Assembly (NCBI GenBank): GCA_946965045.2
Contig: OX337232.1
Coordinates: forward strand, 2,852,001 to 2,916,000
DNA length: 64,000 nucleotides
DNA from: Epithemia pelagica
Taxonomy: Eukaryota; Protista; Bacillariophyta
Direction: 5' to 3'
The notes under the pieces are model-generated. The model was not told the origin of the DNA and made no database searches. It saw only the letters and a program-made list of their open reading frames with translations. Positions 5,230 through 49,700 of this stretch are shown here, one piece after another (position 1 is the stretch's first letter; every line of letters starts with the position of its first letter). Made by a program: the position numbers and the translations under genes.

Positions 5230-8200
5230 ATGAAACCGTCCATGGGTGGTGCAGGCTGGTGGAATGGACGAGCTGCTGGACGACTGGTTGTCGTCTTTGT
5301 CGTCGTCGTCGTCGAGGTAGCCATTTCACTGAATGACGTCGGTGTTGGAGCCTTTGCTCCCTTGTCCATTCGAAGGAGGACGGTCGCCGAATCCTTTTGG
5401 TTGCCGTCGTCGTCGTCGTCCCGATTGAATGCCATTCCTCCTTCCAACCAGTCGGGTCCAGACAGCAGCAACAACAACAACCCATCGGAGAACAACAGTG
5501 GCACCACTCCACCACCATTGGTCCATCCTCAACCACCCACGACCATTACGCGTCATGATTTGGCACGGCGACAAGTGGCCAATCCTCTCTTGTTGGGACG
5601 ACAACGACAACACGAACGATCCTCCTCGTCTCCCCCAGTAGCACAAGCCGCGGCACACCGACGTACTACCACCACGACAACCACACCGGCCAACATTCCC
5701 ACCATTCGTCGCGGAGGTCCTCGATTGCAATCTTCCTCTTCGTCGTCGTCGTCGCCGTCTCGACCAGCAGTCACATCGACACCAAAATCGACACCAAAGC
5801 AACCACAACCACAAATGACCTTTCGACCACGTCCCACGACCACCACCATGCAGGCATTGACCGCAACGGAACGTCAAACCGCCACAGCCTTGTCGTCGAC
5901 GGCCGCACAACGAGGACAACACCATCATCAACAACAACGGCATCAACAACCATCTCCCTCCAAACCATTCGCCACTACCACAAGAAGTACCACGACACGA
6001 ACCTTGTCGTCGTCGTCACAACCACGAGTGATGACTGCCAGATCCAACCAACCACAACCGCAACGACGACAGGTGCAAGTGGTGGCCAATCGTGTTCGTC
6101 CCGAACCACCATCCACTCCTCCAGCTCCTCCCGTCTTTCATACAACGTCAAAAGACGGAAGCAACCAGACAACGACAACCACGACTACCAGTAGTAGCAG
6201 CAGCAATCGCCGTTCCATTCAAGTGCAACCCACGAGTGAATCCTCCTCGGTCCGCTCGACAACGACTACTACTACTTTGTCGGAGCCCGAACCAACCACC
6301 CCCCAAGTACCGCCCGTTGTTACCACCACCTTTCGAAAAACCACCACCTTTCAACAACAACAGCAACAACATCAAATGAGTCGTCGTCAACGTCAAGTCT
6401 CGATTCACAATGATTCCCCACGAATGACCGCCATGGCCAAGCAACGCAAGACGGTGAGTGCGAGCAGTCCCATTCTCCAGGGAGCTGGACCCACAGCATC
6501 ACCACCGCCACGACGCCAAGTAGGAACCACTGTCACGAGCCGCAATGCCAATTTTCGAGGACAAGGCGATGGTCCTCGACGACAACAACGACCACAACGT
6601 TCCTATTATCGACCACCACCCAGCGATCGTAGTACTACCAGCACTCAACAAGGATCACCGGAAACGAGCAAGACCATTACCACCAGCATGTGGATTCCGC
6701 CCTCGGCTTCCACGCCCAAGGAACCCGAACCACCACAACCAGCCGTGCCCGGATCCGAACCACCACCCGCAACCGTCGCACAAACAACCACGGAATCCAC
6801 CACCGCCCCACAACAGAATGATACCGCGCCACATGCCAATGCCGAGGGATCGTCGTTGTATGACCGTCGCAATCAACACTTGGTGCAAGCTATTGAGGCG
6901 GGACACGACACGCGATGGGGTGTCCTGGAAACCAACAAGGCAACAGCCGCAACAAGGACGAATGAAACCAATGCGATTGGGGGTGGCCAGGGATGGACCC
7001 TTCCCACCACGACGACGACGACGAGTACGGCAAGTACGACGAGTACGGCCATGGACGAGTTGGCTCGTGCCTGGGGTGCCATGAATCAAGATCATGACGA
7101 TACGACAGCGTCGTCGTCTTTCCAGTCGGAACCACCGCGAGTCCCCCTGGAGGCTGCTGACACGGCAGCAAAGTCGGAACCACCCCCACCGACTTTCCGA
7201 ACGGAACCACCAGTACTCGCAATGGAAGCTGCTTCCTCCCAACCACCACCAGCCACCTCCTCTATGACCATGGAGGACTTGGCCCGGGCCTGGGGAACCA
7301 TGAATCAAGATCATGAGGACACGTCGTCGTCTGCCACAATGCCTCCTGTTGCAGCTGCTCTCAAACAGGAGGCTCCTCCTGCATCATCATCATCACCATC
7401 ATTCGAGTCATTGCCGCGGTCGGAAGCAGACTTGTATCAGCAACGCAATCAGCATTTGGTGGCAGCCGTCGAGGCTGGACACGAGACTCGGTGGGGAGTC
7501 TTGGAAACGGACAAGGCAGCCGCGGAACATCAAGTCCAACACCAGGTCATTGGAAAAAGCAGTCACGACAACGACAAGGACAACAACAAAGAAGGCACCA
7601 CCACTGCTTCCTTTGCCACCGAAGCTCCCTCGTCGAGTACTACTAGTACAACAACAACCATGGAAGACTTGGCCCGTGCTTGGGGTGCCATGAATCAAGA
7701 TCATGATGACACGTCGTCGTCGTCGTCTAGCACCATGCCGCCCGTTGCAGCTTCTCCTCCTGCATCATCCTCATTCGAGTCATTGCCGCGGTCGGAAGCA
7801 GACTTGTATCAGCAACGTAATCAGCATTTAGTGGCGGCCGTCGAGGCTGGACACGAAACGCGATGGGGAGTCTTGGAAACGGACAAGGCAGCCGCCGAAC
7901 TACGCATTCCACACGATGTGATTGGAAAAAGCATCCAAGACGACAAAAAAGCAGGAACCACTGCTTCCTTTGCCACCGAAGCTCCTTCGTCGAGTACTAC
8001 TAGTACAACAACAATGGAAGACTTGGCCCGTGCCTGGGGTGCCATGAATCAAGATCATGATGACACGTCGTCGTCGTCGTCGTCTAGCACAATGCCTCCT
8101 GTTGCAGCTTCTCCTCCTGCATCATCCTCATTCGAGTCATTGCCGCGGTCGGAAGCAGACTTGTATCAGCAACGCAATCAGCATTTAGTGGCGGCCGTCG

Positions 8201-11197: not shown

Positions 11198-11953
11198 TTA
11201 GGTATGAAAAAACAAATGAAACAATCCCTTTAGATACAAGACAATTTCTTTGGGTCCCAATTTGGATTCTCCATAGAGTCGATCGACAAAGACAATGGGA
11301 ACTTCCTGGATGCGGTATCCAGCTCGTTGCGCCAAGACGAGAATTTCCATTTGAAAGGCATAGCCGGTACATTGCACTTTGGGCAAGATTTGCACGAGGG
11401 CGGCCCGATCGTACAAGCGAAAACTGCCCGTCAAATCGGTACACTGTCGCGGATTTAGCAAGAAATGCGCCAAGACATTGGCTCCCCGGGAGGTGATTTT
11501 GCGTTTCCAATCCCAACCACACACACCCGCGTCGGGGGACCCCAAAATGTACCGCGAACCGCAGACAATGTCGACTTTTTTCGAGGTCGAATCATCACCA
11601 CTATTATTAGTATGATCCATGAGTTGAATCATTTGGGGAATGTATTTGGGATGATGCGACAAATCGGCATCCATGATAATGATGCGATCGCCCTTGCTCA
11701 CTTGTTGCAAGCCATCCAAATAGGCCGATCCCAAGCCCAACTTTCCGGGTCGTGACAAAATGGCAATCTTGTCCTTCCCATAGACGCGTTGCAATGTTTG
11801 CGCCACCTCCAAGGTCCCATCGGGAGATTGATCGTCGACCACGACAATTTCGTACCGCAGCTTGTGCTGGACAAACATTTGATCCAACAAATAGACCATG
11901 AGGGGTAAATTCTCGCGTTCATTGTATGTGGGCAATATCACGGAATACAACAT
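11198..11953 (-). CDS. DPM1: Dolichol-phosphate mannosyltransferase catalytic subunit (GT2)
   Basis: [82 protein letters not shown]. Confidence 0.93.
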
Positions 11954-12154
11954 GATGATGAGAAAAACCTCTGATGCAGCTGCGCCAATGATGAATCCCT
12001 ACAACCGGTGCAGCAACAACCGCAATGCAACGACTCCACGCAACAAAGGATTCTGAGATGGATATAGATGACCTGACAATGACAACACCCCAAACAGAAT
12101 GCTCGTGGTGTTTGTTTTCAAAAAATCAATCCCCTGTCTTTTCTCTTTCGCTAC

Positions 12155-12250
12155 TGACGCGCGCGCCGGACACGTACTGGGCGCGCGTTTGAATTGGTGC
12201 GACTTAGAAGCTACTCATCGGAACCATGGGGAAACCCACAACCCACGTCA
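12155..12250. promoter_or_regulatory. CCRE-like bZIP sites (TGACGC 12155, ACGTCA 12245) in the DPM1/gene B divergent promoter
   Basis: Match the CO2/cAMP-responsive element hexamers described for the Phaeodactylum ptca1 promoter. These hexamers also occur by chance about once per kb. Confidence 0.3.
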
Positions 12251-12583
12251 TTGTCAGCAGGGAACGGCGGCGATGACGAATGCGACGAGACGACATACTC
12301 AAATATTAAACAGGAAAGAGCCGATCCCTTGGGAGGAGGACTCCATACGTTCCTTGTCGTCCATCCGTCTTGACACTTGTGACAGCAAATACAACCTCCA
12401 GACCGTTTGTTGACTATTCATCTTTGTGTCTTTGGCGAAAGGGACACAGCGATAGTTATCTCCTCTGCAATCATCAGGAAGATAGTCGTCGGAGAGTGTT
12501 TGTTTGAGACAAATCACAAGAGGCAAACGTGACAAGAGATTGAAGTTCCAAAAGACATTGATTGTCAAGTTAGTTTCTACAGA

Positions 12584-15500
12584 ATGAAGGTTGGAGATTC
12601 GCTCAGCATGAATCTGGTGCTTGTGGCATTGCCATTGGTGATACTGTCAAGCAGTTGGACCACGATTCAGGCCTTTCAACACCAACATCAAGTCTCGGTG
12701 TCACGACCCTCCAACAGTTGGTTGGCCGCCGAAACCTCGTCGTCGTCCCCCGCTCCTGCCACCACGACAGGAGGAGACACGCCGGATCAGTCGTTGTTTG
12801 CTCGTCGGACCATTCAATTGGCCGATGCGGCCTCGCAGGGCAAATCGCGATGGGGACCTTCGGAAAATCGTCGGGCACAAAATTTGGCCCAAAGCATGGT
12901 TTTGACCAACAGTGCGTCTCCCATTGATCCACCCGCGACACCGGTGGAATTGCAAGACACGGCAATGGTGGGGGCGGCCCGACGCTTGCCGAAACAATGG
13001 GCGGCCCTCCGAGCGCAAGTCACTCAATTGCCGACGCAACCCAAGGAAACGGCAGCTGAACCCGTCGTCGACGATGCTGTGGCCTCCTTGCAGGCCGCCT
13101 TGCCCAAACAATGGGCGGCGTTGCGAGATTTGGTGGGTATGGCCCGTCTTCCTCGACAATGGGCCGCCTTGCGTCAAGAAGCCTCGGAACCAACGACGAC
13201 GGCATCCTCACCCGTGGCGCCACCGTCGTCCTCCTCCTCGTTGCCCCGTCAATGGGCAGCCCTTCGTGAAGAAACCAAGAAGACCGAATTGGCCCGTCCC
13301 TTCTTTGGGGATGTGGTCCAAACGACCACCAAGGAAGAAACACCCGCAGAACAAGTCGTTCCTCAAGAAGAAGCAGCAGCAGCACCGGTCGTGGGTACCG
13401 CCCTCAGTGGCCCTAAACTCTTCGAAGCCCGTACCTTGCAAGTGGCCGCAGCGGCGGAAGCAGGCATGTCGCGATGGGGAGCTCCCGAAAACCGACGGGC
13501 TGCCATGATGGCAGCGGCCTTGGCGGGAACTGCCCCGGCAGTTGCGGTGGAACCAACGCCGGCGGCCGCCACCACGGCCCCTCCGGCCGAAACGGTTCCT
13601 CCCAAGGCCGAGGAATCGGCCGCATTGGTGCCGAAACAAAAACCATCCATTGCCGCCCTTACGCGATCGATGGAATCGCGTTGGAGCAATTTGGCACGAA
13701 GTCCGGCCATGCGGGGAACTTCGTTGCCGATTCGAGCTCAACCCCGACCTCAATTGGCGAGCTTCAACAAATCTTCCTTGCTCACCCGAAACAATTACTT
13801 CCGGTCGCAACGTGTTCTTACGGGTGGCAACACGGCCTTGCCGCCATCGACCACACCCAGTGCCACTCGTCCCAACCAGTTTGCTCGACGAGTCCTCACG
13901 GGTGGCAACACAGCCTTGCCTCCGTCGACGACACCCAGTGCCACTCGTCCCAGCCAGTTTGCTCGACGTGTTCTTACGGGTGGCAACACGGCCTTGCCGC
14001 CGTCGACAACGCCCAATGCCAGTCGTCCCAATCAGTTTGTCCGTAATACGAGATTTGCTCGTGCGATTCCAGCCTCGCGACCCACTCTGGCGTCCCCGTC
14101 GGGATCGATTCGCAATGTCATTAGTCGACGACAAATTAGTGTGAACACCGACGAACAAGCCAGACCCGTCATGGCCGCGGCCGTGATTCGGGGACGCAAG
14201 GCCGCTACTCCTCCCAAGGCCCAGGAGCCCTCGGCTCCACCGGCAGCTCCACCCGTTCCCGTTACGAGCACTCCAGCACCGGCCGCACCACAAGTGCAAG
14301 GTCCACCGGGCAGCAGCGTGGCAACCGCCGCACCAGCACCACCCATTACGGAAGCCGAAGTGCGGGCCTTGTTTAATCTCTGGAACGACGCCTTGGCCAC
14401 ATTGGATTCGACCACTGTGGCGGAACGGTATGCAGCCGATCCCATTCTGCTTCCCACCGTGTCCGATGAACCCCGGACCGATTTTGCCAGCATTAAGGAT
14501 TATTTTGACAACTTTTTGAAACTCCAACCACAAGGTGTGATTGTGGAAGGAAAGGTCAAGATTGGACCCAATTGGGCGCAAGATGCGGGTATCTACGAAT
14601 TCACCATGGGTACGACTGGTGCCAAGGTTCGGGCTCGTTACTCCTTTGTCTACGTGTTTGAAGAGGGAGAATGGAAGATTGCCCATCATCACTCGTCCAC
14701 CATGCCCGAAGCTCCCGAAACGGTACCCACCGAAGATGAAGTCAAGGGGTTCTTCACACTGTGGAATGATGCTCTTGCCACGTGTACGTTTTCCATGGAG
14801 GCACTGTCGTGAGAGCTCAACCGTGCAGTATGTCTCACTCCTCTCTTGTGGTCTCTACCTTTTTATCGAAACAGTGGACTCGGATACTGTCGCACAACGT
14901 TATGCACAGAACGCGGTTTTGTTGCCGACAGTTTCCGATGTACCTCGTACAGACTATGCCAGCATCAAGGACTACTTTGACAACTTTTTGCAGCTCAAAC
15001 CAGAAGGTGTGATTCTAGACAGCTTTGTAACGACGGGAAAGAATTTGTGCAAGGATGTCGGTATTTACGAATTTACCTTGGGTGCGACTGGCGAAAAGGT
15101 TCGGGCTCGGTACTCCTTTGTTTACATCAAGGAAGGAATGGATTGGAAGATTTCTCACCATCATTCGTCCGTTATGCCGGAAGCTCAAGCAAGCAGTGCC
15201 ATCTCGGAAGAAGAAGTGCGGGATCTCTTCACGCTGTGGAACGATGCTCTTGCAACATGTACGTAGTCGAAGATGAGTAATTTGCTTTGATTTCCTGTCC
15301 AGATCTCAATTTTTTTGTTCTTACACCCTCTTGTGCATGCAGTGGACAGCGATAAGGTGGCCAGTCGGTACGCCAAGGAATCAGTGCTTCTCGCTACAGT
15401 ATCCGATGTCCCCCGCACGGACTATGCAAGCAAAAAGGCATACTTTGATGACTTTTTGAAGAAGGAACCCCAGGGTGAAATTTTGGAATCCTTTGTAGAA

Positions 15501-15662
15501 ATTGGCGACGGTTGGTGCAAAGATGTTGGCATTTATGAATTCACAATGGGTACCACTGGTGAAAAGGTCAAGGGTCGCTACTCCTTCCTCTATTCGTTTG
15601 AAGACGGAGAATGGAAGATTTTGCATCACCATTCCTCCATCATGCCCGAGAGCATTTTATAA
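12584..15662 (+). CDS. Gene B: plastid-targeted iota-class carbonic anhydrase (LCIP63/COG4875, NTF2/SnoaL-like) with 3 domains and a roughly 580-aa low-complexity N-terminal arm
   Basis: Exons 12584-14783, 14875-15258 and 15343-15662, with GT-AG phase-1 introns after WNDALAT. Three domains each contain LFxLWNDALAT...LLxTVSD.PRTD...YFD.FL...GIYEF...RYSF.Y...WKI.HHHSS.MPE. Leader TIQA|FQ. Confidence 0.88.
13811..14044 (+). repeat. Three 78-bp (26 aa) coding repeats in gene B
   Basis: RVLTGGNTALPPSTTP[SN]A[TS]RP[NS]QF[AV]R repeated three times. Confidence 0.9.
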
Positions 15663-16249
15663 GCAAACACACACAACGGAAAATCCTCACACGCGGACCA
15701 TAAGCGACTCCGTGGATGACGAGCTTTGGGATCTGTTCCATCATCATGCACGTTGTCCCTTGTAGACCTTTCACTCACAGCCGATTGTGTTATGAATGGT
15801 TAAGCTTTTGTGGATGTATCGAGTTGGGTTGTTTCGTGTTGCGTAGAGAATTTCATTGCATATAAATGGTGGGGAAAGTCACAAGCTATTGCACTTGTAT
15901 ACGTTCGATGGGTTGTGAATGGAGATGAGAAAATGGCGAATGCCGTTTTGCTAGAAATGAGAATGAATGAAAAGATGAGAATGTGCGTAGTATGGACCGT
16001 TACTGTGATTTCCACAATGACGAGCCATATAATGTATAGAGTAAAATGTCGTGTGCGGTAGTCATTATCTGCAAGGAAAGCGCACAAGATGTGTACGGTT
16101 TGCAACACGGGTTCGACTTCTAGAGATGAGACAGTCCACTGTCATTTGCCATGTTCAAGGGATTGCGGATAACCTAGAGGAACTCTCTCTAGCTGCTACT
16201 CTAAAATGACAAAATTATCTTCAAATACTGTGAACTGAGCAACGTCGTC

Positions 16250-16368
16250 AGGAACGACCATACCACGATGACAGCACCGCTTCCCGTCTGCTCAGCGAAG
16301 TTAAGCATCGTCGGGCCCGGTTAGTACTACGGTGGGGGACCACGTTGGAATCCCGGGTGTTGTTCTTT
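16250..16368 (+). rRNA. 5S rRNA gene, copy 2
   Basis: Same sequence as copy 1 except one substitution (GGCCCGGTT versus GGCCCAGTT). Ends in TTTT. Confidence 0.92.
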
Positions 16369-16479
16369 TGAAATTTTGGAGAAGAATCTCACCTTGGAGT
16401 GTCGAGTGTCGATCCTATCGGATGATGGTAAAAAAATACATAGGCTACTCTATCTTTTCTGTTAGGAGGCAGTACAAAA

Positions 16480-16738
16480 TGACGTTTCGAACAAAGGTTC
16501 ATGTCGGCTGTGGGTGTATTGTAGGTGTGTGTCGGCGTTGCGCAAAACCATGCAGGGAGACCATTTTCCCATCAGCATCCTAGGAGCACAATACGGCTAG
16601 CTAGCAGCAGCGATATTGTAGGAGGGGTAGCAAAGAGGATCCATTAAAGACGACCCAATAGCGATTGGATCGTCATACTTCCGAACGACGCCCGAGACTA
16701 CGAAATGCGACATAAAGAACCGACACGAAGGATGACGT
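16480..16738. promoter_or_regulatory. Two TGACGT CCRE-like sites upstream of gene C
   Basis: TGACGT at 16480-16485 and 16733-16738, within 600 bp of the start codon. Confidence 0.3.
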
Positions 16739-17047
16739 CTTTGAAGACCGGCTGATCACATTGCAGACACAAGAGCCTCACAAAAACCAAAACCCACATT
16801 CACTCTGAACTGTTGAATAGTGTGAGTGGCAACGAGAACGACGACAACCACAACAACGTCTTGGAGAGAAACAAGGAAATCATCATTCATTCATCCTCTT
16901 GTTGGAAGGAAAAAAGAAAGGACAGGCAATCGGTAGTGGGAGCATTTCAGAGATTCGCGAAGTAGAGAACAATCTTTCGTCCACAAAAGGAGGAGCCGAA
17001 ATTCCACCATGCTGACACCTACAATGCCTCCCAAAAGGCGACGACGA

Positions 17048-20000
17048 ATGGAGGCACAGTGGATTGTCCTTGTGCTTCTTGTTCATTGGTACGGTAGTTC
17101 CAATGCCTTTCAACCGTCTGTGGGTGTCGTTTGGCACCCCAACAAACCATCCGTGGTGGATCAGGAAGGGGGGTCCCTCACGTGGACCAACCACCACAAC
17201 AACCACAAGTACATTCGACAAAAGACATGTCACGGCGCTAGTGTTGCCCATGGTTCCAAGTCCCAGGAATCCGCTGACATGAACAATGCAAAGACACGAC
17301 CGAAATTCTGGGAGGACACGAGCGCCAAGACGGCCGAAACGGTCTTGGCTCGATTGCCCAAACAATGGGCCGCGGTTCGACAAGAAGAACGACAACGACA
17401 AGCCGAGACGACGACAAAATCAATACCCCGTCAATGGGCGGCGATGCGGGCCTTTGCGTCCCATCCAGAGCCGGAGAAGGACGTTCCGTCGGGTCGAGCA
17501 CAGGATTCCCATTCAGCGACGGGACACGAATTTCCATATGGAGGAGCAGAGCATCTCCCAGCGTATAGGGCAAAGAATCCGTCATTACCGACCGAACGAA
17601 ACGACCAGTATGACGATTTGTGGGTAGATGAAGAAATGACCACGGCCAGTCAGAGTTTGGATGAGCTTTTTATGACAGATAATATGATGTACCCTGTTCC
17701 AGAAGAACCAAAGGCAACTGTTGCCCATGGTACCATTCCAGACAGCGCCGATGCGTCCATTGGGGAGGAAACCAGTTCCAACGCGGCTTTCATGAATGCG
17801 GACAGTTCCAAACCGTCCTGGATCGTAGACGAGGAAGATGGAGTCATTGTGTGGCTCCCCGAAGATGATATGGAAAAAGTCACGGAAAATCGACCCCAAC
17901 ACCATCTTGAAACACCTGCCGATCAGGTCGCTACCAAAGTCCAAGTCGGATGGTCCCCTGGCGGTGCAGCGAACGACCGCCATGACATTGCCGTAGAATC
18001 CACACGTGTCCACAGCCAACGAGATGTGGAACGATCGCCCTTGTCGTTTCAGAAAAAGAAATCGCTCACTGCCACTCCGTCCGTTTCGGGAACCATTCAT
18101 TCATGGCATGACAAAGTTCGCAGTCCTCGAACGATTCGGAAAACCGTTCCTCGTTGGTCTTCCAACATGAAACCTCAAGAAATTTCGGCATTTCCAGAAG
18201 GACATGTCGGTCCGACGGATGAGAATACGTATCCAATTCATACTAAACGCGAATTTGCGGAAGGAAATGTCCGTCCAACTCAGAATACGTATCCGATTCC
18301 TCTGAAAAGCACAATCACGCGCCGACTTTCTCTAATGGACCGTGAAAGCCCCATGGAAGGTCACCCGTCCATTGTTGTGGTTCACGCAGTTGAGCCAGAG
18401 GACACTTCATCATGGCCTGCACCCACCCGAGGATTCCGTTACCGGCAAGTTGCTGTCAGCAGCGAGGATGAGCACCCATTAAAAGTGGGTCCTGATTACC
18501 AAGACCAAGAGAAGAATATCGTGAGTGCCACCAAGCAAGTTACTCCTAGCAACGATGATGAAAGACCGCTTAAAGTGGGTCCAGATTACCAAGACAACCC
18601 CGCCATTGGTGCCAGGCGTCAGATTACTGTAAGCAACGATGATGAAAGACCCTTGAAAGTGGGTCCGGATTACCAGCATTACGAAAATGGCACGAGTGCC
18701 AGGCTGCAAGTTCCGGTACGCAATGATGACGAGAGGCCTCTTCAAGTGGGCCCTGATTACCAAGAACGCGAGACTGTCTCTAAGGCCAGAATGCAAGATG
18801 CTGAGAGCAACAACGATGAACAGCCATTGAAAGTGGGGCCAGATTACCAAGGCAATGACAATGTCACTGGTGCCAGAATGCAGGTTCCGGAAAGCAACAA
18901 CGACGAGCAGCCGTTAAAGGTGGGTCCTGATTACCAAGGCAATGACAACGTCACTGGTGCCAGGGTAAACGTCCCTGTAAGCAACGACGATGAGAGACCC
19001 TTGAAAGTGGGTCCTGATTACAAAGATCACGAAAATATAACTGGTGCCAGAATGCAAGTTCTGGAAAGCAACAGCGATGAACAGCCGTTAAAGGTGGGTC
19101 CTGATTATCAAGATCATGAGAATATCACTGGTACCAAGATGGAAGTTCCGGAAAGCAACAACGACGAGCAGCCGTTAAAGGTGGGTCCTGATTATCAAGA
19201 TCATGAGAATATCACTGGTGCCAAGATGCAAGTTCCGGAAAGCAACAACGATGAACAGCCGTTAAAGGTGGGTCCTGATTATCAAGATCATGAGAATATC
19301 ACTGGTGCCAAGATGCAAGTTCCGGAAAGCAACAACGACGAGCAGCCGTTGAAGGTGGGTCCTGATTACCAAGACGAGGATAATAATTTTCTTCGTGCCA
19401 AGTTGGAAGCTGCTTTGAGCAACGATGATGAGCGCCCTTTGAAAGTGGGTCCTGATTACCAAGACCAGGACAACATCACTGGTGCCAAGTTAGAAGTTCC
19501 TGTAAGCAACGACGATGAGCGCCCTTTGAAAGTGGGTCCTGATTACCAAGACCAGGACAATATCACTGGTGCCAAGTTGGAAGTTCCCGTAAGCAACGAC
19601 GATGAGAGACCCTTGAAAGTGGGTCCTGATTACCAAGACCAGGACAACATCACTGGTGCCAAGTTGGAAGTTCCTGTAAGCAACGACGATGAGAGACCCT
19701 TGAAAGTGGGTCCCGATTACCAAGACGAGGATAATAATTTTCTTCGTGCCAAGTTGGAAGCTGCTTTTAGCAACGACGATGAGCGACCTTTGAAAGTGGG
19801 TCCTGATTACCAAGATGACGAGTATATCAGTGGTTTGAGCTGGAAACTTCCTGTGAGCAACGATGATCAGAAGCCATTAAAGGTGGGTCCTGATTACCAC
19901 GAGGACGATATCAGTTTTGTCCCTGACAGGTTGGAAGTTGCTTCGAGCAACGATGATGAGCGCCCTTTGAAAGTTGGCGCTGATTTTCAAGACCATGACC

Positions 20001-22755
20001 ATGACGACATCAGTGGTGCGACGTGGCAAGTTCCTGAGAGCAACGATGATGAAAGACCCTTGAAAGTGGGTCCTGATTACCACGAGGACGATAAGAATTT
20101 TGTCCGTGCCAGGTTGGAAGCTGCTTCGAGCAACGACGATGAGCGCCCTTTGAAAGTGGGCCCTGACTACCATGACCATGACGACATCGGCGGTGCGACG
20201 TGGCAAGTTCCTGAGAGCAACGATGATCAAAGACCCTTGAAAGTGGGGCCTGTTTACCAAGACGACGATAAGAATTTTGTCTGTGCCAGGTTGGAAGCTG
20301 CTTCGAGCAACGACGATGGGCGCCCTTTGAAAGTTGGTCCTGACTACCAAGACCATGACGACATCGGTGGTGCGAGTTGGCAAGTTTCTGAGAGCAACGA
20401 TGATGAAAGACCCTTGAAAGTGGGACCTGTTCACCTAGACGGCGATAAGAATTTTGTTCGTGCCAGGTTTCAAGCTGCTTGGAGCAACGATGATGAGCGA
20501 CCTTTGAAAGTGGGTCCTGATTACGAAAACGGCCCTGTCGTTGGTACTAGGTTGAAAACGGCATTGAGCAACGACGATGAGCAACCCTTGAAAGTGGGTC
20601 CTGATTACCAACAAGACGATAAGAATCTTTTACGTTCTAAGTTGAAAGCTGCTTTTAGCAATGACGATGAGCATCCGTTGAAAGTAGACCCTGACTACCA
20701 ACAAGACGATAAGAATCTTTTACGTTCCAAGTTGAAAGCGGCTTTGAGCAACGATGATAAGCGTCCTTTGAAAGTGGGTCCTGATTATCAGAACGACCGT
20801 GTCGCGGGAGCCAGGTTGCAAACTCCTCCGAGTAACGATGATGAACGACCGTTGAAAGTAGGCCCTGATTACCAAAATGACCGTGTCACTATGGACAAGA
20901 TTGCGTCTATAAGACACGGATCTTTGCGTTTCAGGGAGAAAACGAGTGGTCGTGTCCGGAACCAAAGGGAAATGGACAGTACAGTTGCGGTATTACAGGC
21001 CGCACCGTCTATCACGGAAGCTCAAGTTCGTTCTCTGTTTGATCATTGGAATGACGCGTTGGCGACCTTGAACTCAACTACGGTGGCAAATTGCTATGCA
21101 GTGGAACCAATCCTACTCCCAACCGTGTCAGATGAGCCTCGAACAGACTTCCAAAGTATCAAGGAATATTTTGACACATTTTTGAAACTGGAACCTCAAG
21201 GCGTCATCATGGATGGCAAAATCAACATTGGACCTGGTTGGGCGCAGGATGCTGGTATCTACGAGTTCACAATGGGTGCAACTGGTACCAAGGTAAAGGC
21301 TCGATACTCTTTCCTTTATGTATACGAAGGCGGGGAATGGAAAATAGCGCATCATCATTCCTCCACAATGCCAGAAAGCTTGGAAAAGACACAAATCACT
21401 TCGGAGGAGTGTAAAGGTCTCTTTGATCTTTGGAACAATGCTCTTGCTACTTGTAAGTTCGATGCTTTCGGATTTTCTCAGTGACGTGAGCTCTTGGCTT
21501 GTCTGGACAGAACAACAGGGTACATCTCACACGTGTGTTCTGCCAACCTTTACACTTTCGCCACAGTGGACTCTGAGAATGTGGCCAAACGCTACGCGAG
21601 CAACGCCGTTCTTCTCCCTTCGGTCTCAGATGTTCCTCGAACGGACCATGCTAGTATCAAAGAGTATTTCGACACGTTCTTGAAACTGAAACCTCAAGGT
21701 GTTATTTTGGAAAGTTTTGCTACCACTGGTAGTGATTGGTGCAAGGATGTCGGTATATATGAATTCACCATGGGAGAAACTGGCGAAAAGATCAAAGCCC
21801 GGTATTCATTTGTCTACGTCAAAGAAATGGGGGAATGGAAAATTACACACCATCACTCATCCCCAATGCCCGAATCTGACACAGTACAAAAGCTATCAGA
21901 ACAAGAAGTGAGAAACCTTTTTAATGTTTGGAATGATGCACTGGCAACTCGTAAGTCTTCTTTTCATGGCCTTGAATCACATGCCTACCAGAGTTGTATC
22001 TTATCAGTTGCTTTCTCTGTGTTTCCTGCATCGGCATGAAATGTTTGTTATCTGGATGATCTACAGTCGAAAGTGATACAGTCGCCAATAGATACGCAAA
22101 AGACTCAGTCCTTCTTCCTACGGTTTCCGATGTACCTCGAACGGACTATGAAAGCAAGAAGGAATACTTTGACGTCTTCTTGAAAAGTAAACCGCAGGGA
22201 GAGATTATCGAGTCATTTGTAGAAACTGGAAATGGATGGTGCAAGGACGTTGGAATTTATGAATTCACAATGGGCACAACGGGCCAAAAAGTCAAAGGAC
22301 GGTATTCCTTTGTCTATACGTTGGAAGATGGGGAATGGAAAATTTTGCACCACCATTCCTCTGTCATGCCCGAGACCATACTAACGCCGTCCATGACGGA
22401 CGAGGAAAAGTCGATTCGTTCCTTGTTTGACGAATGGAATGACGCGTTAGCGACGTTGGATTCCGAGAAGGTAGCCCAGCTGTATGCCTCCGATCCCATC
22501 TTCTTGCCCGCAGGGCCGGAGGAGCCACGAACGGACTTTGCCGGTATTCAGGAGTATTTCGACACCTTTTTGAAATTAAAGCCCCACGCCAAGATTCTCG
22601 AGGGAAAAATCACCTTGGGAGACAATTGGGCCCAAGATGCCGGTGTGTATGAAATGACAATCGCAGCTACGGGGGACACGGTCCAAATTCGTTACTCGTT
22701 TCTCTATGTGTTGGAGGATGGAAAATGGAAGATTGCGCATCATCACAATGAGTAA
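17048..22755 (+). CDS. Gene C: plastid-targeted iota-class carbonic anhydrase with 4 domains (4th degenerate) fused to a very long repetitive N-terminal arm
   Basis: Exons 17048-21452 (ORF open from 17009), 21567-21950 and 22067-22755, with introns at the same WNDALAT position as gene B. Leader SSNA|FQPS. Domains 1-3 end in HHHSS; domain 4 ends in HHHNE-stop. Confidence 0.87.
18458..20890 (+). repeat. 28 coding tandem repeats of about 84-93 bp (28-31 aa), core SNDDERPLKVGPDY
   Basis: Counted 28 PL[KQ]V[GD][PA][DV][YFH] cores in the translated ORF. Confidence 0.93.
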
Positions 22756-24019
22756 CAAATCTCTCTGCTTGAAGTAGGGAACACGACGACGCCTCCACCA
22801 AACGTTTTGTCGTGTCTCAAGATGCCCATATTTTCTGTTACCTCAAGAATGTGAACCGTATTGCGTGTGGTGGATGGACTGACTGGACAACCGTGTGATG
22901 AGGCTGCTAGCGATACGGGAAAATGGCGATGTTCCCTTCTGCATAACATCGCCAAGACCAACCTGTGGACGATTTCTGCATCAAAGCTCGACGGTGAAAT
23001 GATTGGTCGAGATTGATGGCGGATGGCAATATGGAACCATGGGAGATATCAGCGTTATAAGCGCAGAGGACGATTGATGGCGGTGTGGAGTCATGCGAGA
23101 TCTCAGCGGTATAAGCGCAGGGGACGATACTCATGCATGTATGTGTTGGAAAATGGCAATGCGAAGATTTTTGTACCACCAATCTTTGCGGAAAAGGGTT
23201 CTGTTTGGCAGTTGGTGTGAGATTCCGTGTTTTGCAGACACTTCTGCTCTTGTGGATTGCGCTTTTCAAGTCATATCGGTGTCCTTGTATCCCTGCAAAC
23301 GGAATCGATCCGTCCTTCTAGTTGTGGAATAGTACAATAGTAACCATGATAGTGTTAGGATTTCACCGACCCTTGTTCACAGCGAGTGCCACGACACCTA
23401 TATGTATTGTAGCTGCAAACCGACTTGAGAAGCGCGACCAACCAACAGTCCGACCATGTTCTATGGGATGCAATACGAAAGACATTATTGCAATGGGTCG
23501 TTGTCTTGGACCTTGGAACGAATCAAGGTCGTTTCTCCTCTGTCAACGTGTGTTTTTTTTGTCTCATGGTTTCCAAAAAATGAGACCGATTCTTTTGGTG
23601 TGTTTGAAAATTCAAACTGCGAAAGGATTCCCGGCGACGTTGAGTGGTGGTGCGACATCAACAAGTGCTTCCGAAATAGACACAAATTGACGTATGTTTC
23701 GGTCCAAGCCATCAACCACAATCAATAGAAAACGAAGAAGAAAGGAGAGAGAGCGAGGAGATCTCTATCCGTATTCCAAAAGACACACTTGAAAAGAAAA
23801 GAACGACACATACAAGGCCTCCACAAGCACCAAGCGAAAATCGAGAGCCGGATCCATCAGAGAAATCAACTGCCAAGCAAGGGCGAGAGCAACTCTTGAC
23901 ACTGCATCAACACAAGGTTCCCTCAAGCTCCCAACGAACTTCTGCTCCACGAAGCACAGGGTCTTGTGTACCAGAGGCCAGAGTGACCCCCCTTTTGTTT
24001 GTTGTTGTCTCAATGAACC

Positions 24020-27000
24020 ATGCAGTGTGAGACACGACAAGAACAACAACAATGGCAAGATGACGTTGGGACACATACTGCCACTAGCATAACGTGGCGC
24101 AAGTTTCGTCGTCGTCGTCATGGTCGTCCGCAAGGCTGGTGGCTGGTTGTCGTCGTCGTCGTGTTGGCACTCCAGCAACAATGGTCGTCTTTGAATCCCC
24201 CCGGGTTTGTTGTCGTTCACGCGTGGAACAGCAATGTTCAATGGCCCTTTCAACAAGCGATTCAAGCGGCTCAAAAGCATCGATCCTGGTCCTCCTTGGT
24301 GTTTGGGGGGTGGAATGTTGCACCAGAACAGGAATGGAATGCCTTGTGGAATCGGGCCATTGATTTGTATCATCGGGCGACACGAACTTCATCGTCGTCA
24401 ACGTCATCGTCGTCCTGGCGTCCCTCGTCGCCCCATGCCGCAGTCGTGTTGGAAGAATTGACCAAATTAATCACCACCTTGGGCACCTGTCGTCCCAGCA
24501 GCAGCAAAGACGACGACGACACGTCCAACAACCAGAACAACAAATTGACACCCCATTCCATTTCCATGATGCAGGGTGCGTTGGATGCCATTGAAGCACA
24601 AGTGGTACGAGAAGAACAAGATCAACAACAAGCGGCCCTTCTCGAGGCACAACGACGAATACAAACCATGACACCCACCACACGGGATGTCACCACGTCG
24701 GAATCACCACCGTCCTTCTCGCAATGGTCGCCCTTTGGTGGAGGACGACGACGACGACGGTCACGGTCGGACAAGCCCGACGACGACAAGTACGACGAAA
24801 ATGGCAATTCCCTAACGGACTACAAGGAGGATCCCATGGTCGTCTTGGTTCGAGCTGCTCAATGCATTGCTCGGGCCATTCAAGATCCCACTGTGGATCC
24901 GGCCCAAGTTCAACCCTTGGTCCATGCCTATGCCAAGGTCAAGGCACAATTGACCGTTGCCCAAGAAACCAATGACGACAATCATGACGACGACGACAAG
25001 GACAAGACGTTGCCCTATTTTATGCAACCATCGACAACGCCAAATCCCAGGACACGCCACAATAACAACAACAACAACCAGGGCTCCGTTATGGAACAGG
25101 GCAGTCGCAAGTTGGAGCCGGAGGATACCAGCAACCAGGACGAAACGGGACGAACATGGTGGAAACCATGGGAGTCGTTCTCCTCCTCAACCACCACGGC
25201 TCCCTTGTCGACCATGACTCGAGCCTGGTACAACCAAGCCTCGGTACCACAAAATCCATGGCAAACCACACAACCACAACCCTCCGAGACGGTCGATAGC
25301 AGTCCTACTTCAACCACAATGGATTCCATGTCAATTCTCAATCCACAAGGTCCCATGCCACGACGACCAACACGCATTCGTGTCGCGTCCTCCCAACCGC
25401 CACCACAAGAATCCACGACATTGACCCAATCCAACGCCCCCGGGATTTCAACCGCAACCACCGTCGCCACACCCGGGATTGCTGCACAAAAAGAAGAAGA
25501 ACAAGAACCATCCAAGGCTTTTGCGTCACCTCTGCAATCGCCACAACCAGCACAAGTACAACCACCTGCACAAACACAAACAGTAACGACTCCTCCTCCT
25601 CCACCAACGCAGCAAGCACAAGCCCAACCAGAAACGACTCCACCACCACCACAAAAATCACAATCACAACCAGTAACAAGTCCACCACCACAGCAACAAG
25701 AAGCACCAACACAACGTACATCGGGTGAATCACCGCCCAGCCCTCAAGCCACGTCAATGGCCCTTTCACCACCACAGCCACCATCTCCCGTATCGTCGTC
25801 AGTGCCCTCGCGCAGTCGACTCCAACCAGAACCACTCTGGCAAGCTCCTGCCAGTTTGCAACCCAGCATGGATTTGGCACAGCAATTGGAAGAAACACTT
25901 TTGTCAGATACAGGTTCGATGGATCCAGTACAAAGCTTTGTCAATTCCTTGGCTGCACAAGCACCCAAACCAGACTCGGAATCCTCCAGGACAACGACTG
26001 CTTCTACGACTACTCGTGCATCGTCACCGTCGACAACCCCTTATGTCCCTGCTACTGCTTCGTCTTCGTTTTCGTCTTCTGAAGCTGCAACTCAAAAGTC
26101 TCCTCAAGCATCGTCTTTTGCAGAAACGAGCGGTATGCCTGGACCTTTTCCTTCGATTCCAGCTCCAACATCCATGACCAATCCAACATCATCGGCCACG
26201 CCAACCATGGTGGACACGAATGCTACGGCACGCATGGAACAATTTGTCGAATCGTTGAGGGCCATTCGGGAAGGAAAGTCCGTTGCACCCAGTACAGCAA
26301 CAACAACGACGACCAACACTGCCTCAACAATGGCCATACCACAGCCTCTGTCAACACCCTCCGAGGTCGACCCAGCACCAACAACAACCGCCTCGGTCGA
26401 CCAATCCGATGTTGCCAGTCTCATGGAACGTGTCCAACAAACATTGGACGCTGAACAGGCACCACAAGAAGAGGCGATTTCATCCGTCACGGACACGGTA
26501 GAAACGACCCGACAGAATCCGTTCACAACAACGAATAGGGATGGACCAGAACGATTGACGCCTCATCCACCCAATGCTCCACCACCGTTGGAGGACGTGA
26601 CCATGGAGGGTCGTCATCGTCCTCCTCCTTCGTCCCCAGTGGACCGCCACATGCGACGTGTCCAGGAAACGGCCCAGAATCTCAACAGTCGCTTCTCGTC
26701 CATGCTGGAATACAGCGACTTGGTTCCCGGAGAGGATTCCAAGGACATGTTCAATGGTGCAAAGGCTATCGACGACCAAGACTACTACCATGGCATGAAC
26801 GACCAGGACCCCAAGGAACAGTTAAAAGTCCAATTGCAACACCTCGAACGTCAAATGGACAAATACCTCAAAGACGAACAGGCTTGGGAGGAAGTGGAAG
26901 AAGGGTGGGATTCGGCCATGCAATTTTGGGTTACCGAAGCATCACCGGCGGTCCGGGAAGGATTTGCCACGGCCTGGAAACAAATTAGTACGGCGTGGAG

Positions 27001-27817
27001 TATGGTGTACCAAATCTTGGTACAACAAAACAAGGCGTCCTGGGTCCCTCGATGGGCCTTGCCCCCACCATCGTCGTCTAGTAATAACTTGATGGATCAG
27101 TTACGACCGGAACGATGGACCGCGTGGGCCCGTCAATTGTCGTGGGTCGAAACAGGCAATGACAGTGTGGGGCACCAGTCTCCCAATCCAACACCCTCTA
27201 CTGCTGCTGCTGCTTCGTCTTCGTCTCCTCAAGTCATTTCGAAGAAACCAAGAAAGGGCAAGGGCGGCGAAAAGGACTATGACGCCATGGCTACAGCCGA
27301 TCCAGACAAGTATGTCGAACCGGAATGGACCCGTTTGGCGGCGGAATGGACTCGGCTCAATAGCGACACGTCCGAATCGACGAAACCATCCAACAACACA
27401 CCAACCAAACCACCCAACACAATGGTCGTTGCCGCCGCAGAAGCACGACCAGTAGTATCCCCGGATTGGTCGCAACTTGCCCAGGAATGGGCTTCCCGAA
27501 ACCGTGACGAGACGCAAGCACGACAAGGCCAACCCGAGGAAACATTCTCCCGTGATGATGATGGAATGATTGAGAATTCGTCGGAATCCAGCAAGGATAA
27601 CCAAGATAATATCCACGAAGACTCTTGGCAAGATCTTGCCCAAGCATGGAAAAGTAGAAACAGCGAAGATCAACAGCAAGAACAACGGCAATACGAAACA
27701 CCCAAGGTATCTTTGGGTACCAAAGCAAAGCCTGCAACAGCAGACGATACAACCCAAGTGAGCTGGCAGTCCTTGGCCAATGATTGGGCCGAACGAAATC
27801 GTGATTTGCACCCTTGA
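24020..27817 (+). CDS. Gene D: large low-complexity protein with possible plastid leader and four C-terminal WxxLAxxWxxxN motifs
   Basis: 1265-aa ORF. Hydrophobic stretch GWWLVVVVVVLAL then VVVHA|WNS. P/T/S/Q-rich core. WTRLAAEWTRLN, WSQLAQEWASRN, WQDLAQAWKSRN and WQSLANDWAERN near the C-terminus. Confidence 0.7.
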   Translation: MQCETRQEQQQWQDDVGTHTATSITWRKFRRRRHGRPQGWWLVVVVVVLALQQQWSSLNPPGFVVVHAWNSNVQWPFQQAIQAAQKHRSWSSLVFGGWNVAPEQEWNALWNRAIDLYHRATRTSSSSTSSSSWRPSSPHAAVVLEELTKLITTLGTCRPSSSKDDDDTSNNQNNKLTPHSISMMQGALDAIEAQVVREEQDQQQAALLEAQRRIQTMTPTTRDVTTSESPPSFSQWSPFGGGRRRRRSRSDKPDDDKYDENGNSLTDYKEDPMVVLVRAAQCIARAIQDPTVDPAQVQPLVHAYAKVKAQLTVAQETNDDNHDDDDKDKTLPYFMQPSTTPNPRTRHNNNNNNQGSVMEQGSRKLEPEDTSNQDETGRTWWKPWESFSSSTTTAPLSTMTRAWYNQASVPQNPWQTTQPQPSETVDSSPTSTTMDSMSILNPQGPMPRRPTRIRVASSQPPPQESTTLTQSNAPGISTATTVATPGIAAQKEEEQEPSKAFASPLQSPQPAQVQPPAQTQTVTTPPPPPTQQAQAQPETTPPPPQKSQSQPVTSPPPQQQEAPTQRTSGESPPSPQATSMALSPPQPPSPVSSSVPSRSRLQPEPLWQAPASLQPSMDLAQQLEETLLSDTGSMDPVQSFVNSLAAQAPKPDSESSRTTTASTTTRASSPSTTPYVPATASSSFSSSEAATQKSPQASSFAETSGMPGPFPSIPAPTSMTNPTSSATPTMVDTNATARMEQFVESLRAIREGKSVAPSTATTTTTNTASTMAIPQPLSTPSEVDPAPTTTASVDQSDVASLMERVQQTLDAEQAPQEEAISSVTDTVETTRQNPFTTTNRDGPERLTPHPPNAPPPLEDVTMEGRHRPPPSSPVDRHMRRVQETAQNLNSRFSSMLEYSDLVPGEDSKDMFNGAKAIDDQDYYHGMNDQDPKEQLKVQLQHLERQMDKYLKDEQAWEEVEEGWDSAMQFWVTEASPAVREGFATAWKQISTAWSMVYQILVQQNKASWVPRWALPPPSSSSNNLMDQLRPERWTAWARQLSWVETGNDSVGHQSPNPTPSTAAAASSSSPQVISKKPRKGKGGEKDYDAMATADPDKYVEPEWTRLAAEWTRLNSDTSESTKPSNNTPTKPPNTMVVAAAEARPVVSPDWSQLAQEWASRNRDETQARQGQPEETFSRDDDGMIENSSESSKDNQDNIHEDSWQDLAQAWKSRNSEDQQQEQRQYETPKVSLGTKAKPATADDTTQVSWQSLANDWAERNRDLHP

Positions 27818-46734: not shown

Positions 46735-49700
46735 ATGGGATCGACCTCTTTTGTTGCTGGACGGCGGCGTTCCAGTGTCGTCCTACCAATACGGCCTGGT
46801 GGGTGGTGCATGGTCGTGTGTGGGATGGTTCAACTACTGGTTGGCGGCATGGGGAGGTGCCAGGCCTTTGTTCCATTGCATCCACAACGACAACAAGAAC
46901 GATCCTCTTTTTGGATTCGTCACGTTTCGACTGCTCCCACCCCCCTGTCCACTCCACCACCGTCCTGGCAGGACGACCTGCTCGAGGACAATGACAAGGA
47001 TGACGACCATGACGACTTGGAACAAGTGTATTGGATTCCCGATACGGAATTGGATCAAGAATTGGCCGAAGTGAGTGCCATGATGGCCGAATTGGAAGCC
47101 TACTTGCAAGAAGAACATGACAGTGACGACCATCATGACGAACCATCCTTCCAATCCACTCCCCAGGATGCGGACAATGACGATTTGATGCAAGCCTATC
47201 AACGCGCCAAATCGTCCTTGGAACTCTTGCAACACATTCGACACGATTTGCATTCCCTCAAGGATTCCTTACAAATGGATGACAATGAGGATGATGATGA
47301 TGGCGACAATGAGGATGAACCCGCCCTTCCCTTTTTCTTGACGGCACCTCCACAAGAAGAGGATACCACAAGTACTCCAACACTGGTGCCGCGTCCCCCC
47401 TTGCAGGCACCGTCTCGATTGGTTCTACGACAAGCGCAATGGGAATCCTCCTACAGTCAAAGCATTGATGCCCATTTGCAATGGCAACACCAAAAACGAC
47501 GACGACAACAACAACAACAACAACAACAAGACCTGACGACGCGAGCTGTCCAGTCACCACCACCAGGACGTCGTTCTCGTCGTTCTTCTTCTTCTTCTTC
47601 TTCTTCTTCTTCTTCCAACCCATTGGCCATTCCTCGTCGCCGGGTGGATTTTAGTAGCAACCGCAAGGCCTTGACCATTCCTCGACCGCGTCCGCCGCAA
47701 CAGCCTCCGTCGCGGGCCGTCTTACGACAAGCCGTGTTGGAATCGTCGTACGTCGAGAATGTCGAAAACCAGGACTGGTGGAGGCAGCATGTCCAGCGAC
47801 AACAAGAACGACTCGAAGAACAAGAACTAGAACCAGAACAACAAGACGAGGAGGAGACTGTGACGACGACACGTGTCGCATCTCGGGACGATATGGCCAC
47901 CACACCACCCATGATCCCATCAGACAAGAAAAAGAAGAATCCCGATACACGGGTCCGCAAAGCCGTCTTGCTCGATTCCGATGCATTGGCGGGCGATTCG
48001 ACCAAGAAGGAGGAGGATCCCCGCCGTGTCACCATGTTGCCCGGTTTTCGCAAACCACCCACGGTCCAAACCTTGTGGAGTGAAGGAACCACCACAACCA
48101 CAACAACTCCACGACCCATTCAACGACGCACGACCAGTACCACCACGATTCCCAACCAGGCATGGACCCGGCAACCACCCATTCGGAGGACGACCACCCC
48201 CACGGCACGCCCCGTCCCAACCGTCGTGACACAACAACAACAACAACAAACACCAGAGCGACAACCACAACAAACACCAGAACAACCACAAGTACCATCC
48301 CCAATCACGGCCCGTCGTAGCCCACCACAATCCCCACCACCACGACCGTTTCGGTCCGCCACAACCACAACAACGACAATACGGCGACCCAAACAATGGG
48401 CGCAACTCCAATCCCATGTCGCACAACTCCAACAACAACAAGAACAACCAGAAACAGCGTCGTCCGTTCCTACGTGGCACGTTGGCAATTCCCAAACACC
48501 ACAACAGCCACCACCACAGCCGTCTCTGGAGGAGACTCCAACAACACCAAAAATGACAAGGTCTACGAAACAATCGTTTCCAACAACACCCACGACTGCA
48601 CAACCACAATCACCGCCACCGACGGCGCCCTTTGGTCATTCCGTCGTTCGATCATCCTCCTCCACCCAAACGACGACGGCACGTTCCAAAACCACAACGG
48701 CTGCTGCTGCCGCCTTGGATCCCCAGGATCATGCATCTTCAATCCACCCCTCTCCCTTTCATCAACCCATTGGATCTCTCTCGGGGAATCCAACCAAACC
48801 AACCAGGACGACACCAACGACAAGGTTTAGATCTCCTTCCACGCCGACAACGACGACACAACCAACGACAACTCAAACAACCTCCATGACACGCAAGGTG
48901 GTCGGTGGAGCCTTTGTCCGAGAACGGCCACCCTTTTCCATGGCTCCTCGTCCCCAACAATTGGTACGAGATCCGCAACAACCCTTGACAAAATCCTCAT
49001 CCTTTGTATCAGCATCGTCTCCGTCGTCGTCCTCGTCGGTGAGCCGTCCGACTACGACTACGACCACCCAATCGGCCCCCAGCCGCCGGGCTCCCGACAC
49101 GAGCCATGCACAGAATACCAGTGTCTTGTGGACCCAACGGCATACCACGCCAGCCATGGAGGTGGACCAGCATGCCGTGAGACAAAGTCCGTCGTTGGTC
49201 AATCGGTTGCACCATCATCCCACCATTAGTCGTACGACGGCGGCCCACCAACGACGGCGTCAACAACAACAACAACAACAAGACCAAGAACTTCGACCAC
49301 ACCTTTTAGGAGATCCGCCCATTCCCGTCTCGGTCCAAGCCGAATCGCAAAAGACACTCCGATTCACCACGGCACAGATAGGCCGGGTCGGACTCTCGTT
49401 GCGGAATTTACAAGGCCGACCGGTTCATGCCCTGGTCCGGCTCTTGCAAGGTCCGGAGGATTGTCCCCAATACATTTCCGTCTACAGTGAAGATGGGGGA
49501 AGACATCCCTTTACCGCCATTTTGGAAACACCCGGCGACAACAATTCCCTTTGCATTTGCAACACTGGCCCTTCCCTGTCGTTTCCCCTGACGGGAACCG
49601 TCACTGCGGAATTGGAAGACGAATCCACACTCAATGCTCCTATGAGTACTACTACGACTTCCGAGGACAAGCACCCCAAACCGCCCTTGTTTTCGGTTCT

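Follow-up and report, generated by a model that had tools for sequence, protein, structure and literature searches.

Diatom pyrenoids account for about a fifth of the world's CO2 fixation, and to our knowledge only one linker (PYCO1, confined to a handful of pennates), the shell proteins and a lumenal theta-carbonic anhydrase (CA) are understood in them. In carboxysomes, CcmM combines a gamma-CA domain with SSUL Rubisco-binding modules. Here we describe five genes, A to E, in a 64-kb stretch of DNA (the window; positions 719481-783480 of the 1.49-Mb ENA contig ena:ERZ21939226:ctg1348l), which has about 50% G+C and is eukaryotic and diatom-like. Their products share three short tryptophan motifs, and an initial annotation of this DNA had proposed that they form a sticker-and-spacer network with iota-CAs. 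To that proposal we add two links to the pyrenoid that are supported by sequence comparison: motif 1 matches the helix with which PYCO1 binds the Rubisco large subunit, and gene E encodes a pyrenoid shell (PyShell) domain. On balance, and with modest confidence, we favor reading the region as a neighborhood of pyrenoid-associated proteins of a raphid pennate diatom that use a small vocabulary of docking motifs.

PYCO1 of Phaeodactylum tricornutum (Phatr3_J49957) is a disordered, plastid-targeted repeat protein (PMC10288592). Cryo-electron microscopy of P. tricornutum Rubisco with PYCO1(452-592) placed the helix AAEWGSMNQ (residues 577-585) in a hydrophobic cleft of the large subunit, where W580 occupies a pocket of F102, F104, L361, F366 and F482, and N584 bonds to Y89; a second copy, ASEWASMNT, lies at residues 532-540, and the KWSPRGGS sticker sits on the small subunits (PMC10288592). 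With the flanks given in the supplementary information of that paper (...GNLASEWASMNT... and ...GNLAAEWGSMNQGDSSAAF-end), the helices extend to NLAAEWGSMNQ and NLASEWASMNT, yielding the full pattern L-A-x-E-W-G/A-S-M-N. The authors mentioned variants of the large-subunit helix in other Phaeodactylum proteins, naming none, and suggested that it may be a general pyrenoid sticker (PMC10288592); in the later literature we found no paper that names proteins with such variants.

A shared pyrenoid-targeting motif is already established in Chlamydomonas. As summarized by Nam et al., one short tryptophan helix is reused there for pyrenoid targeting (EPYC1, SAGA1/2, RBMP1/2 and others) and also links the matrix to surrounding structures. 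That motif differs from those described here in its unrelated sequence, its green-type small-subunit target and its lineage, and at least three different motifs, one of them a folded module, are combined in the diatom window. A 2026 review lists no motif-based targeting system for diatoms. Attachment of a CA to a Rubisco condensate through modules or disordered peptides is known from carboxysomal CsoSCA (PMC10614612), although carboxysomal CAs are bacterial and their CA classes and binding modules are unrelated to those of genes B and C. The diatom protein LCIP63 (PMC6776030) has tandem CaMKII-AD (SnoaL-like) domains with HHHSS, as B and C do, and a plastid presequence, for which B and C have putative counterparts, and PyShell proteins (Shimakawa et al. 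2024; Nam et al. 2024; PDB 8wqp) provide the counterpart of gene E. The components of the window belong to established classes, namely iota-CA, PyShell and a sticker that was first described in PYCO1. As far as the literature shows, a 17-valent protein with the large-subunit motif, motif-bearing iota-CA arms, a long-armed PyShell paralogue with a shared motif, the motif 2 hairpin family described below and the clustering of these genes are new.

Motif 1 and the large-subunit helix of PYCO1

Motif 1 (LA..W...N) occurs 17 times in gene A (16 strict copies and one N-to-K variant) and four times in gene D. When these 21 copies were aligned, L, A and W were invariant and N was present in 20. The sequence L-A-x-E/A-W-G/A/S-x-M/R-N, with Trp and Asn(+4) at the contact positions, describes the motif in both genes. 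The gene A consensus, M-D-D-L-A-R-E-W-G-A-M-N-Q-D, agrees with the L-A-x-E-W-G/A-x-M-N pattern of the PYCO1 helix, and the last copy stands at the extreme C-terminus in A and D, and in genes Z and F outside the window, as it does in PYCO1. On this sequence evidence, motif 1 and the large-subunit-binding helix of PYCO1 are one and the same motif. Neither a phmmer search with a gene A fragment nor an hmmsearch with a motif 1 profile against PDB sequences returned a chain, so the link rests on the text and supplementary information of the PYCO1 paper.

The arrangement of the copies is that of a sticker-and-spacer linker, with a conserved short motif recurring at approximately 40-80 amino acid (aa) intervals in a variable, disordered chain. 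The last 12 copies in gene A are 45-69 aa apart and those in gene D 46-53 aa, spacings within the range expected for Rubisco linkers (Nam et al.). The final 3.5 units of the five-unit block of gene A, which precedes these 12 copies, are 357-nt tandem repeats. Across the gene A copies, the Leu, Ala, Trp and Asn of the motif are kept despite differing codons (four Ala, four Arg and two Asn codons are used), while flanks and spacers vary in sequence and length. Because the residues are kept while the codons vary, selection on the peptide, not recent copying, is indicated, which argues for purifying selection on motif 1 of gene A. The body of gene D is rich in W and in S/T/P/Q.

Gene A shares this one motif with PYCO1, and we rejected the idea that it is a PYCO1 homologue. 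The main stickers of PYCO1, KWSPRGGS (small-subunit binding) and GTGYNP (self-association), which recur there in repeats of about 80 aa, are missing: KWSP[RQ] and G[TS]GYNP are absent from every frame of the window. PYCO1 has two helix copies versus 17 in A, and it is basic (isoelectric point 10) and prion-like in composition, whereas the motif region of A (aa 546-1789) is acidic, with a net charge of -112 against +35 for the N-terminal arm. No match to motif 2 or motif 3 was seen in the parts of the PYCO1 sequence that were compared. Whole-protein homology searches with A and E recovered only the queries themselves, low-complexity words having saturated the candidate list. Other matches were set aside: a "P-loop kinase" match of gene A was under the Pfam cut-off, and the protein atlas yielded only sub-threshold look-alikes (EspF repeats; CsoS2 at 0.51) that were not used as evidence.

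If motif 1 acts as it does in PYCO1, A and D would each bind several Rubisco holoenzymes, as matrix linkers or tethers, and Z, F and G would likewise bind the large subunit multivalently. Sequence gives good support to the inference of such binding for these five proteins, and to that of a place for E in the shell or attached to it.

A shell-domain protein, two iota-carbonic anhydrases and motifs 2 and 3

The last 270 residues of gene E matched the DiatomPyrShell family (PF25192, E=1.9e-52) over Pfam positions 6-208 of 209, and the protein matched PDB 8wqp (E=1.3e-39) in two stretches spanning both halves of the domain. Gene E is therefore, by sequence, a PyShell-family protein. It differs from the described PyShell proteins in a disordered 816-aa N-terminal arm that precedes the domain and carries motif 3; a limited search found no long-armed homologue of similar length.

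Motif 2 (RWG..E..[KR]A) was counted five times in gene A and twice in gene B, and motif 3 (P[KR]QWA[AQ][LVM][RQ]) four times in B, twice in C and once in E, so that the motif counts of the initial annotation were reproduced in full. Scanned for in six frames over the entire 64 kb, the three motifs were confined to the reading frames of A-E, the sole exception being one minus-strand chance match of the loosest pattern. Chance was estimated with composition-preserving shuffles (n=3000). Against four copies of motif 1 observed in D, 0.005 were expected; against two of motif 2 in B, 0.0003; and the two copies of motif 3 in C were seen in none of the 3000 shuffles. With the exception of the single copy in gene E, the shuffles never matched the observed counts, and the motifs therefore stand far above composition-matched chance.

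The identification of B and C as iota-CAs was upheld by matches to Pfam CaMKII_AD (PF08332; E=3e-14 for B and 1e-11 for C), by PDB iota-CA matches of their domains (7c5x, E=2e-12; 3h51, E=8e-29) and by HHHSS, which is present in every B and C domain except the last of C (HHHNE). B has three such domains and C has four, C-terminal in the protein. A domain tree containing the first and last domains of B (the pattern missed the middle one), all four from C and three from a protein of Epithemia clementina indicated orthology by position, for domains 2 and 3 at the least. Each gene has two short GT..AG introns, which interrupt the iota-CA repeat at an identical position and in the same phase, in the conserved sequence WNDALAT/L. 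B and C are, by this sequence comparison, paralogues from a three-domain ancestor, C having gained a divergent fourth domain; the earlier remark that the five proteins otherwise look unrelated must be amended for this pair.

Whereas LCIP63 is essentially a presequence and four domains (63 kDa), B and C add N-terminal arms of 560 aa and approximately 1300 aa that bear the motifs. All four motif 3 copies of B read LP[KR]QWAALR. The PLKVGPDY repeats of the C arm might be a tyrosine sticker. A Pfam "Urease_beta" match in C was rejected: it is a sum of partial repeat matches to a 27-residue part of that family, with no urease domain. At 13820-14039, B has three 26-aa tandem repeats (VLTGGNTALPPSTTPSATRPNQFARR) directly ahead of the element RRQ[IV]S[VI]N, which is conserved and also occurs in the B-type arms of Epithemia and of the diatom contig ena:ERZ25042306:ctg3482l.

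Two relatives of the B arm were recovered. The three-domain E. clementina iota-CA provides one, an arm in which motif 2 occurs twice; the second is a protein of 837 aa from another diatom (L001:10001-12514 on ena:ERZ25042306:ctg3482l), with four copies each of motifs 2 and 3. A search of metagenome loci with the B-arm alignment gave no confirmed relatives. The three arms, once aligned, show conservation at motifs 2 and 3 and at a small PFF patch, amid otherwise unalignable spacers. Since the 837-aa protein adjoins a DPM1 gene whose product is 78% identical to that of the window, it is syntenic with B.

Motif 2 is part of a larger family. A profile built from twelve units and searched against 1.84 billion representative proteins detected 197 proteins at E<=1e-3, of which 138 also passed E<=1e-10; each has between 1 and 16 copies, and the named ones are all from diatoms (Entomoneis, Epithemia, Amphora, Odontella, Nitzschia and a Bacillariaceae metagenome-assembled genome). 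Most are 250-650 aa long and have a signal peptide with A/F (the slash marking the predicted cleavage site), an N-terminal coiled coil and a GLRADGG...RVNLGA motif; Pfam has no family for them. AlphaFold2, given a 100-sequence alignment of the unit, predicted a helix, the invariant G-x-S-R-W-G loop and a second helix, with a mean predicted local distance difference test (pLDDT) score of 90.9. In the prediction of the B arm the hairpins scored 76-85, motif 3 formed short low-confidence helices, and the spacers fell below 50. Motif 2 is thus confidently predicted to be a new 40-aa folded module, a helical hairpin, and not low complexity. At least nine motif 2 proteins end in motif 1 arrays whose last copy usually lies at the extreme C-terminus, and the co-occurrence extends over Entomoneis, Epithemia and metagenomic diatom proteins; a 2928-aa Entomoneis protein has 15 motif 2 and nine motif 1 copies, and a 3788-aa Epithemia protein also pairs motif 2 with a terminal motif 1 array. 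Within the family, members P0007-P0153 have a YQQFMAKYIV-type coiled coil and two to nine hairpins.

The motifs also recur beyond the window on the same contig. Gene Z combines six basic, TRWDSVP-containing repeats of approximately 36 aa with a single motif 2 and with three motif 1 copies. Two of the motif 1 copies stand at the C-terminus, giving a layout like that of PYCO1 but with a different repeat sticker. Gene F carries one motif 2 and six motif 1 copies, and gene G five motif 2, two motif 1, one motif 3 (LPKQWAAMR) and approximately nine YSPWSGNW repeats. Eight motif-bearing genes (Z and A-G) therefore lie within approximately 124 kb with ordinary genes between them.

All five leaders in the window have a hydrophobic h-region followed by A/F (A, B, C and E) or by A/W or G/F (D), in agreement with the A/F and A/W endings given by the initial annotation, and the A-E proteins look plastid-directed on this pattern.

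Proposed pyrenoid docking and its alternatives

In the arrangement that we favor, motif 2 would link B to the motif 1 proteins, and motif 3 would link B and C to the shell protein E and to G. Through motifs 2 and 3 the iota-CAs would be docked to the motif 1 scaffold, the shell or both, which would place CA activity at or in the pyrenoid. We hold this tethering step, read from the shared motifs, more tentatively than the neighborhood as a whole. Given such docking, B and C might be functional analogues of carboxysomal CcmM and CsoSCA. A more ambitious joint proposal seems doubtful to us: that motif 1 specifies the Rubisco large subunit, motif 2 scaffold association and motif 3 the shell-matrix interface, that motifs 2 and 3 would build iota-CAs into the pyrenoid as CA is built into carboxysomes, and that this modular code is encoded in a co-regulated island of approximately 124 kb for the CO2-concentrating mechanism.

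Were the pyrenoid reading correct, multivalent large-subunit binders would be far more widespread than PYCO1 (Entomoneis, Epithemia and metagenomic diatoms), and there would be an initial clue to the placement of iota-CAs and of a shell paralogue relative to the Rubisco matrix. It would also bring to light an undescribed small folded module, motif 2, in approximately 200 diatom protein clusters, and it would be relevant to rebuilding pyrenoids in crops.

Several observations weigh against this reading. B and C carry motifs 2 and 3 without motif 1, and immunogold labeling of LCIP63 in T. pseudonana was near the inner chloroplast envelope, not the pyrenoid (PMC6776030). The large-subunit helix of PYCO1 alone was too weak to shift Rubisco on native gels (PMC10288592), and the acidic motif region of gene A is unlike the basic linkers EPYC1 and PYCO1. 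The single motif 3 of gene E is the weakest link, its four-residue core arising in 26 of the 3000 shuffles. The leaders were judged by a home-made heuristic, not ASAFind, and that of gene D is atypical, with an unusually long n-region of 39 aa. A motif 2 protein of Nitzschia sp. Nitz4 has eight copies of the hairpin and no motif 1. Within approximately 19 kb on either side of the B-arm orthologue in the other diatom there are no iota-CA domains or motif 1 genes; the orthologue itself lacks CA domains, and only DPM1 is shared, the cluster being otherwise not conserved.

The last two points bear on how the motifs and the cluster are to be understood. Nitzschia sp. Nitz4 has lost its plastid carbon-fixation genes and Calvin cycle, and because motif 2 is present in this Rubisco-less diatom it cannot be purely a Rubisco sticker; a role in general association or docking is more likely. 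Conservation of the neighborhood in a relative, which had been proposed as a check, was confined to the DPM1/B-arm pair, and the cluster is therefore not ancient in its present form. The region of the B-arm orthologue is transposon-rich, with retrotransposon fragments directly downstream, and the orthologue represents either a protein made of the arm alone or a gene that a transposon insertion has disrupted. The sticker-and-spacer network of the initial annotation thus stands in its anatomy, now joined by the match of motif 1 to PYCO1, and is weakened where it concerned the iota-CAs, which have no motif 1, and motif 2, which occurs without Rubisco.

A different role for gene A is unlikely but has to be taken seriously: A may be a peripheral adaptor that coats the Rubisco matrix or tethers it to the shell or thylakoids, while other, PYCO1-like proteins condense Rubisco. 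The weakness of the isolated PYCO1 helix suits such a role, as do the acidity and great length of A, its separate basic arm of about 500 aa and the presence just upstream of gene Z with its PYCO1-like layout, although 17 motif copies, the last 12 of them spaced as given above, form the anatomy expected of a linker.

It is rather improbable, in our view, that only the motif 1 proteins and E are pyrenoidal while the iota-CA arms are anchored elsewhere (envelope or stroma) through a general plastid partner, the neighborhood being incidental, a product of tandem duplication of B/C plus chance. The envelope position of LCIP63, the motif 2 protein of the Rubisco-less diatom and the fact that most motif 2 proteins have no motif 1 would all be explained in this way, and the region is interrupted by housekeeping genes (DPM1 and a PH-domain gene) and by a copia element, the cluster not being conserved in the relative. 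Such separate anchoring is harder to reconcile with motif 3, which connects B and C both to a PyShell-domain protein and to the motif 1-bearing G, with the union of motifs 1 and 2 in one polypeptide in at least nine independent proteins, and with the gathering of eight motif-bearing genes within approximately 124 kb.

Signal peptides and long S/T/P-rich regions are also typical of diatom wall proteins. That these are secreted, endoplasmic reticulum or cell-wall proteins (mucin-like or silica-associated), with tryptophan motifs serving extracellular matrix assembly, is nevertheless very unlikely: the residue right after the predicted cleavage site is Phe or Trp in five of five proteins, iota-CA and PyShell are plastid families, and motif 1 matches a stromal Rubisco-binding helix. 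Chance resemblance among low-complexity proteins, for which only the modestly unlikely single copy in gene E could speak, can be dismissed almost entirely, and is already refuted for motifs 1 and 2, by the shuffles and the six-frame scan, by conservation of the motifs in other genera, by fixed peptides with synonymous codon variation and by the confident predicted fold of motif 2.

Gene models and surrounding genes

Genes A-E, the five first reported, were confirmed as long open reading frames, all on the plus strand, with a single frame each for A, D and E (Table 1). The DPM1 gene said to lie inside the cluster was found between A and B.

Table 1. Positions of genes and features, in window coordinates unless a contig or a protein is named; a slash marks the predicted end of a leader
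Feature	Position	Strand	Description
Gene A	5230..10599	+	Single exon, 1789 aa; presequence end ...GVGA/FAP
Gene A basic arm	aa 42-545		S/T/P-rich; followed by acidic motif region
Gene A five-unit block	6865..8709	+	Each unit is motif 2 (RWG hairpin), then motif 1
Gene A array	8710..10596	+	12 motif 1 copies of MDDLAREWGAMN / LAREWSTRN types
DPM1-like gene	11198..11953	-	Glycosyltransferase family 2 (GT2); between A and B; housekeeping bystander, useful synteny marker
Gene B	12584-14783 + 14875-15258 + 15343-15662	+	Three exons, 967 aa; leader ...IQA/F
Gene B arm core	12794..13537	+	Motif 2 no. 1, 12794-12913; motif 3 x4, 12983-13273; motif 2 no. 2, 13418-13537
Gene C	17048-21452 + 21567-21950 + 22067-22755	+	Three exons, 1825 aa; leader ...SNA/F
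Gene C motif 3 copies	17345..17455	+	Two: LPKQWAAVR, IPRQWAAMR
Gene C acidic repeats	18458..20947	+	27 repeats of 29-30 aa with PLKVGPDY
Gene D	24020..27817	+	1265 aa; long n-region, hydrophobic stretch, ...VHA/W
Gene D C-terminal array	27290..27814	+	Four WxxLAxxWxxxN copies, last at C-terminus
Gene E	46735..50127	+	1130 aa; leader ...CQA/FVP
Gene E motif 3	48379..48420	+	Single copy, RPKQWAQLQ, in disordered arm
Gene E DiatomPyrShell domain	49324..50004	+	Both beta-sheet halves; Pfam PF25192, PDB 8wqp
Gene Z	contig 706966-708471 (L003:19237-20742)	minus strand of locus	501 aa; leader ...TFA/F; 11 kb upstream of window
Gene F	contig 810816-813908 (L004:26832-29924)		1030 aa; A/F leader; 27 kb downstream
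Gene G (P0017)	contig 818854-830739 (L004:10001-21886)		3961 aa; A/F leader; 35 kb downstream

The introns of gene B (14784-14874 and 15259-15342) were removed precisely in contigs of one public run (X4), while three others (X1-X3) retain both. Because both are spliced out exactly in the X4 contigs, B is transcribed and its model is right. Over 12513-15943, the four public runs differ from the window at many single bases, in differing combinations, which is consistent with allelic or strain variation.

The public ENA call for gene A begins at 4951, 93 codons (4951-5229) upstream of the methionine of the signal peptide; the start at 5230 fits a targeting signal better. Exact look-ups of A with the 5230 start, and of D, found no matching record.

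The remaining genes of the window are unrelated to the motif-bearing set: an AAA/MIT ATPase, DPM1, a PH-domain protein, a copia retrotransposon, a VSR-like gene, an FMO and a phosphodiesterase. The retrotransposon, of Ty1/copia type, occupies 38787-44558 upstream of gene E, flanked by the PH-domain gene on one side and the VSR-like gene on the other, and consists of a gag with a zinc knuckle followed by integrase and RVT_2.

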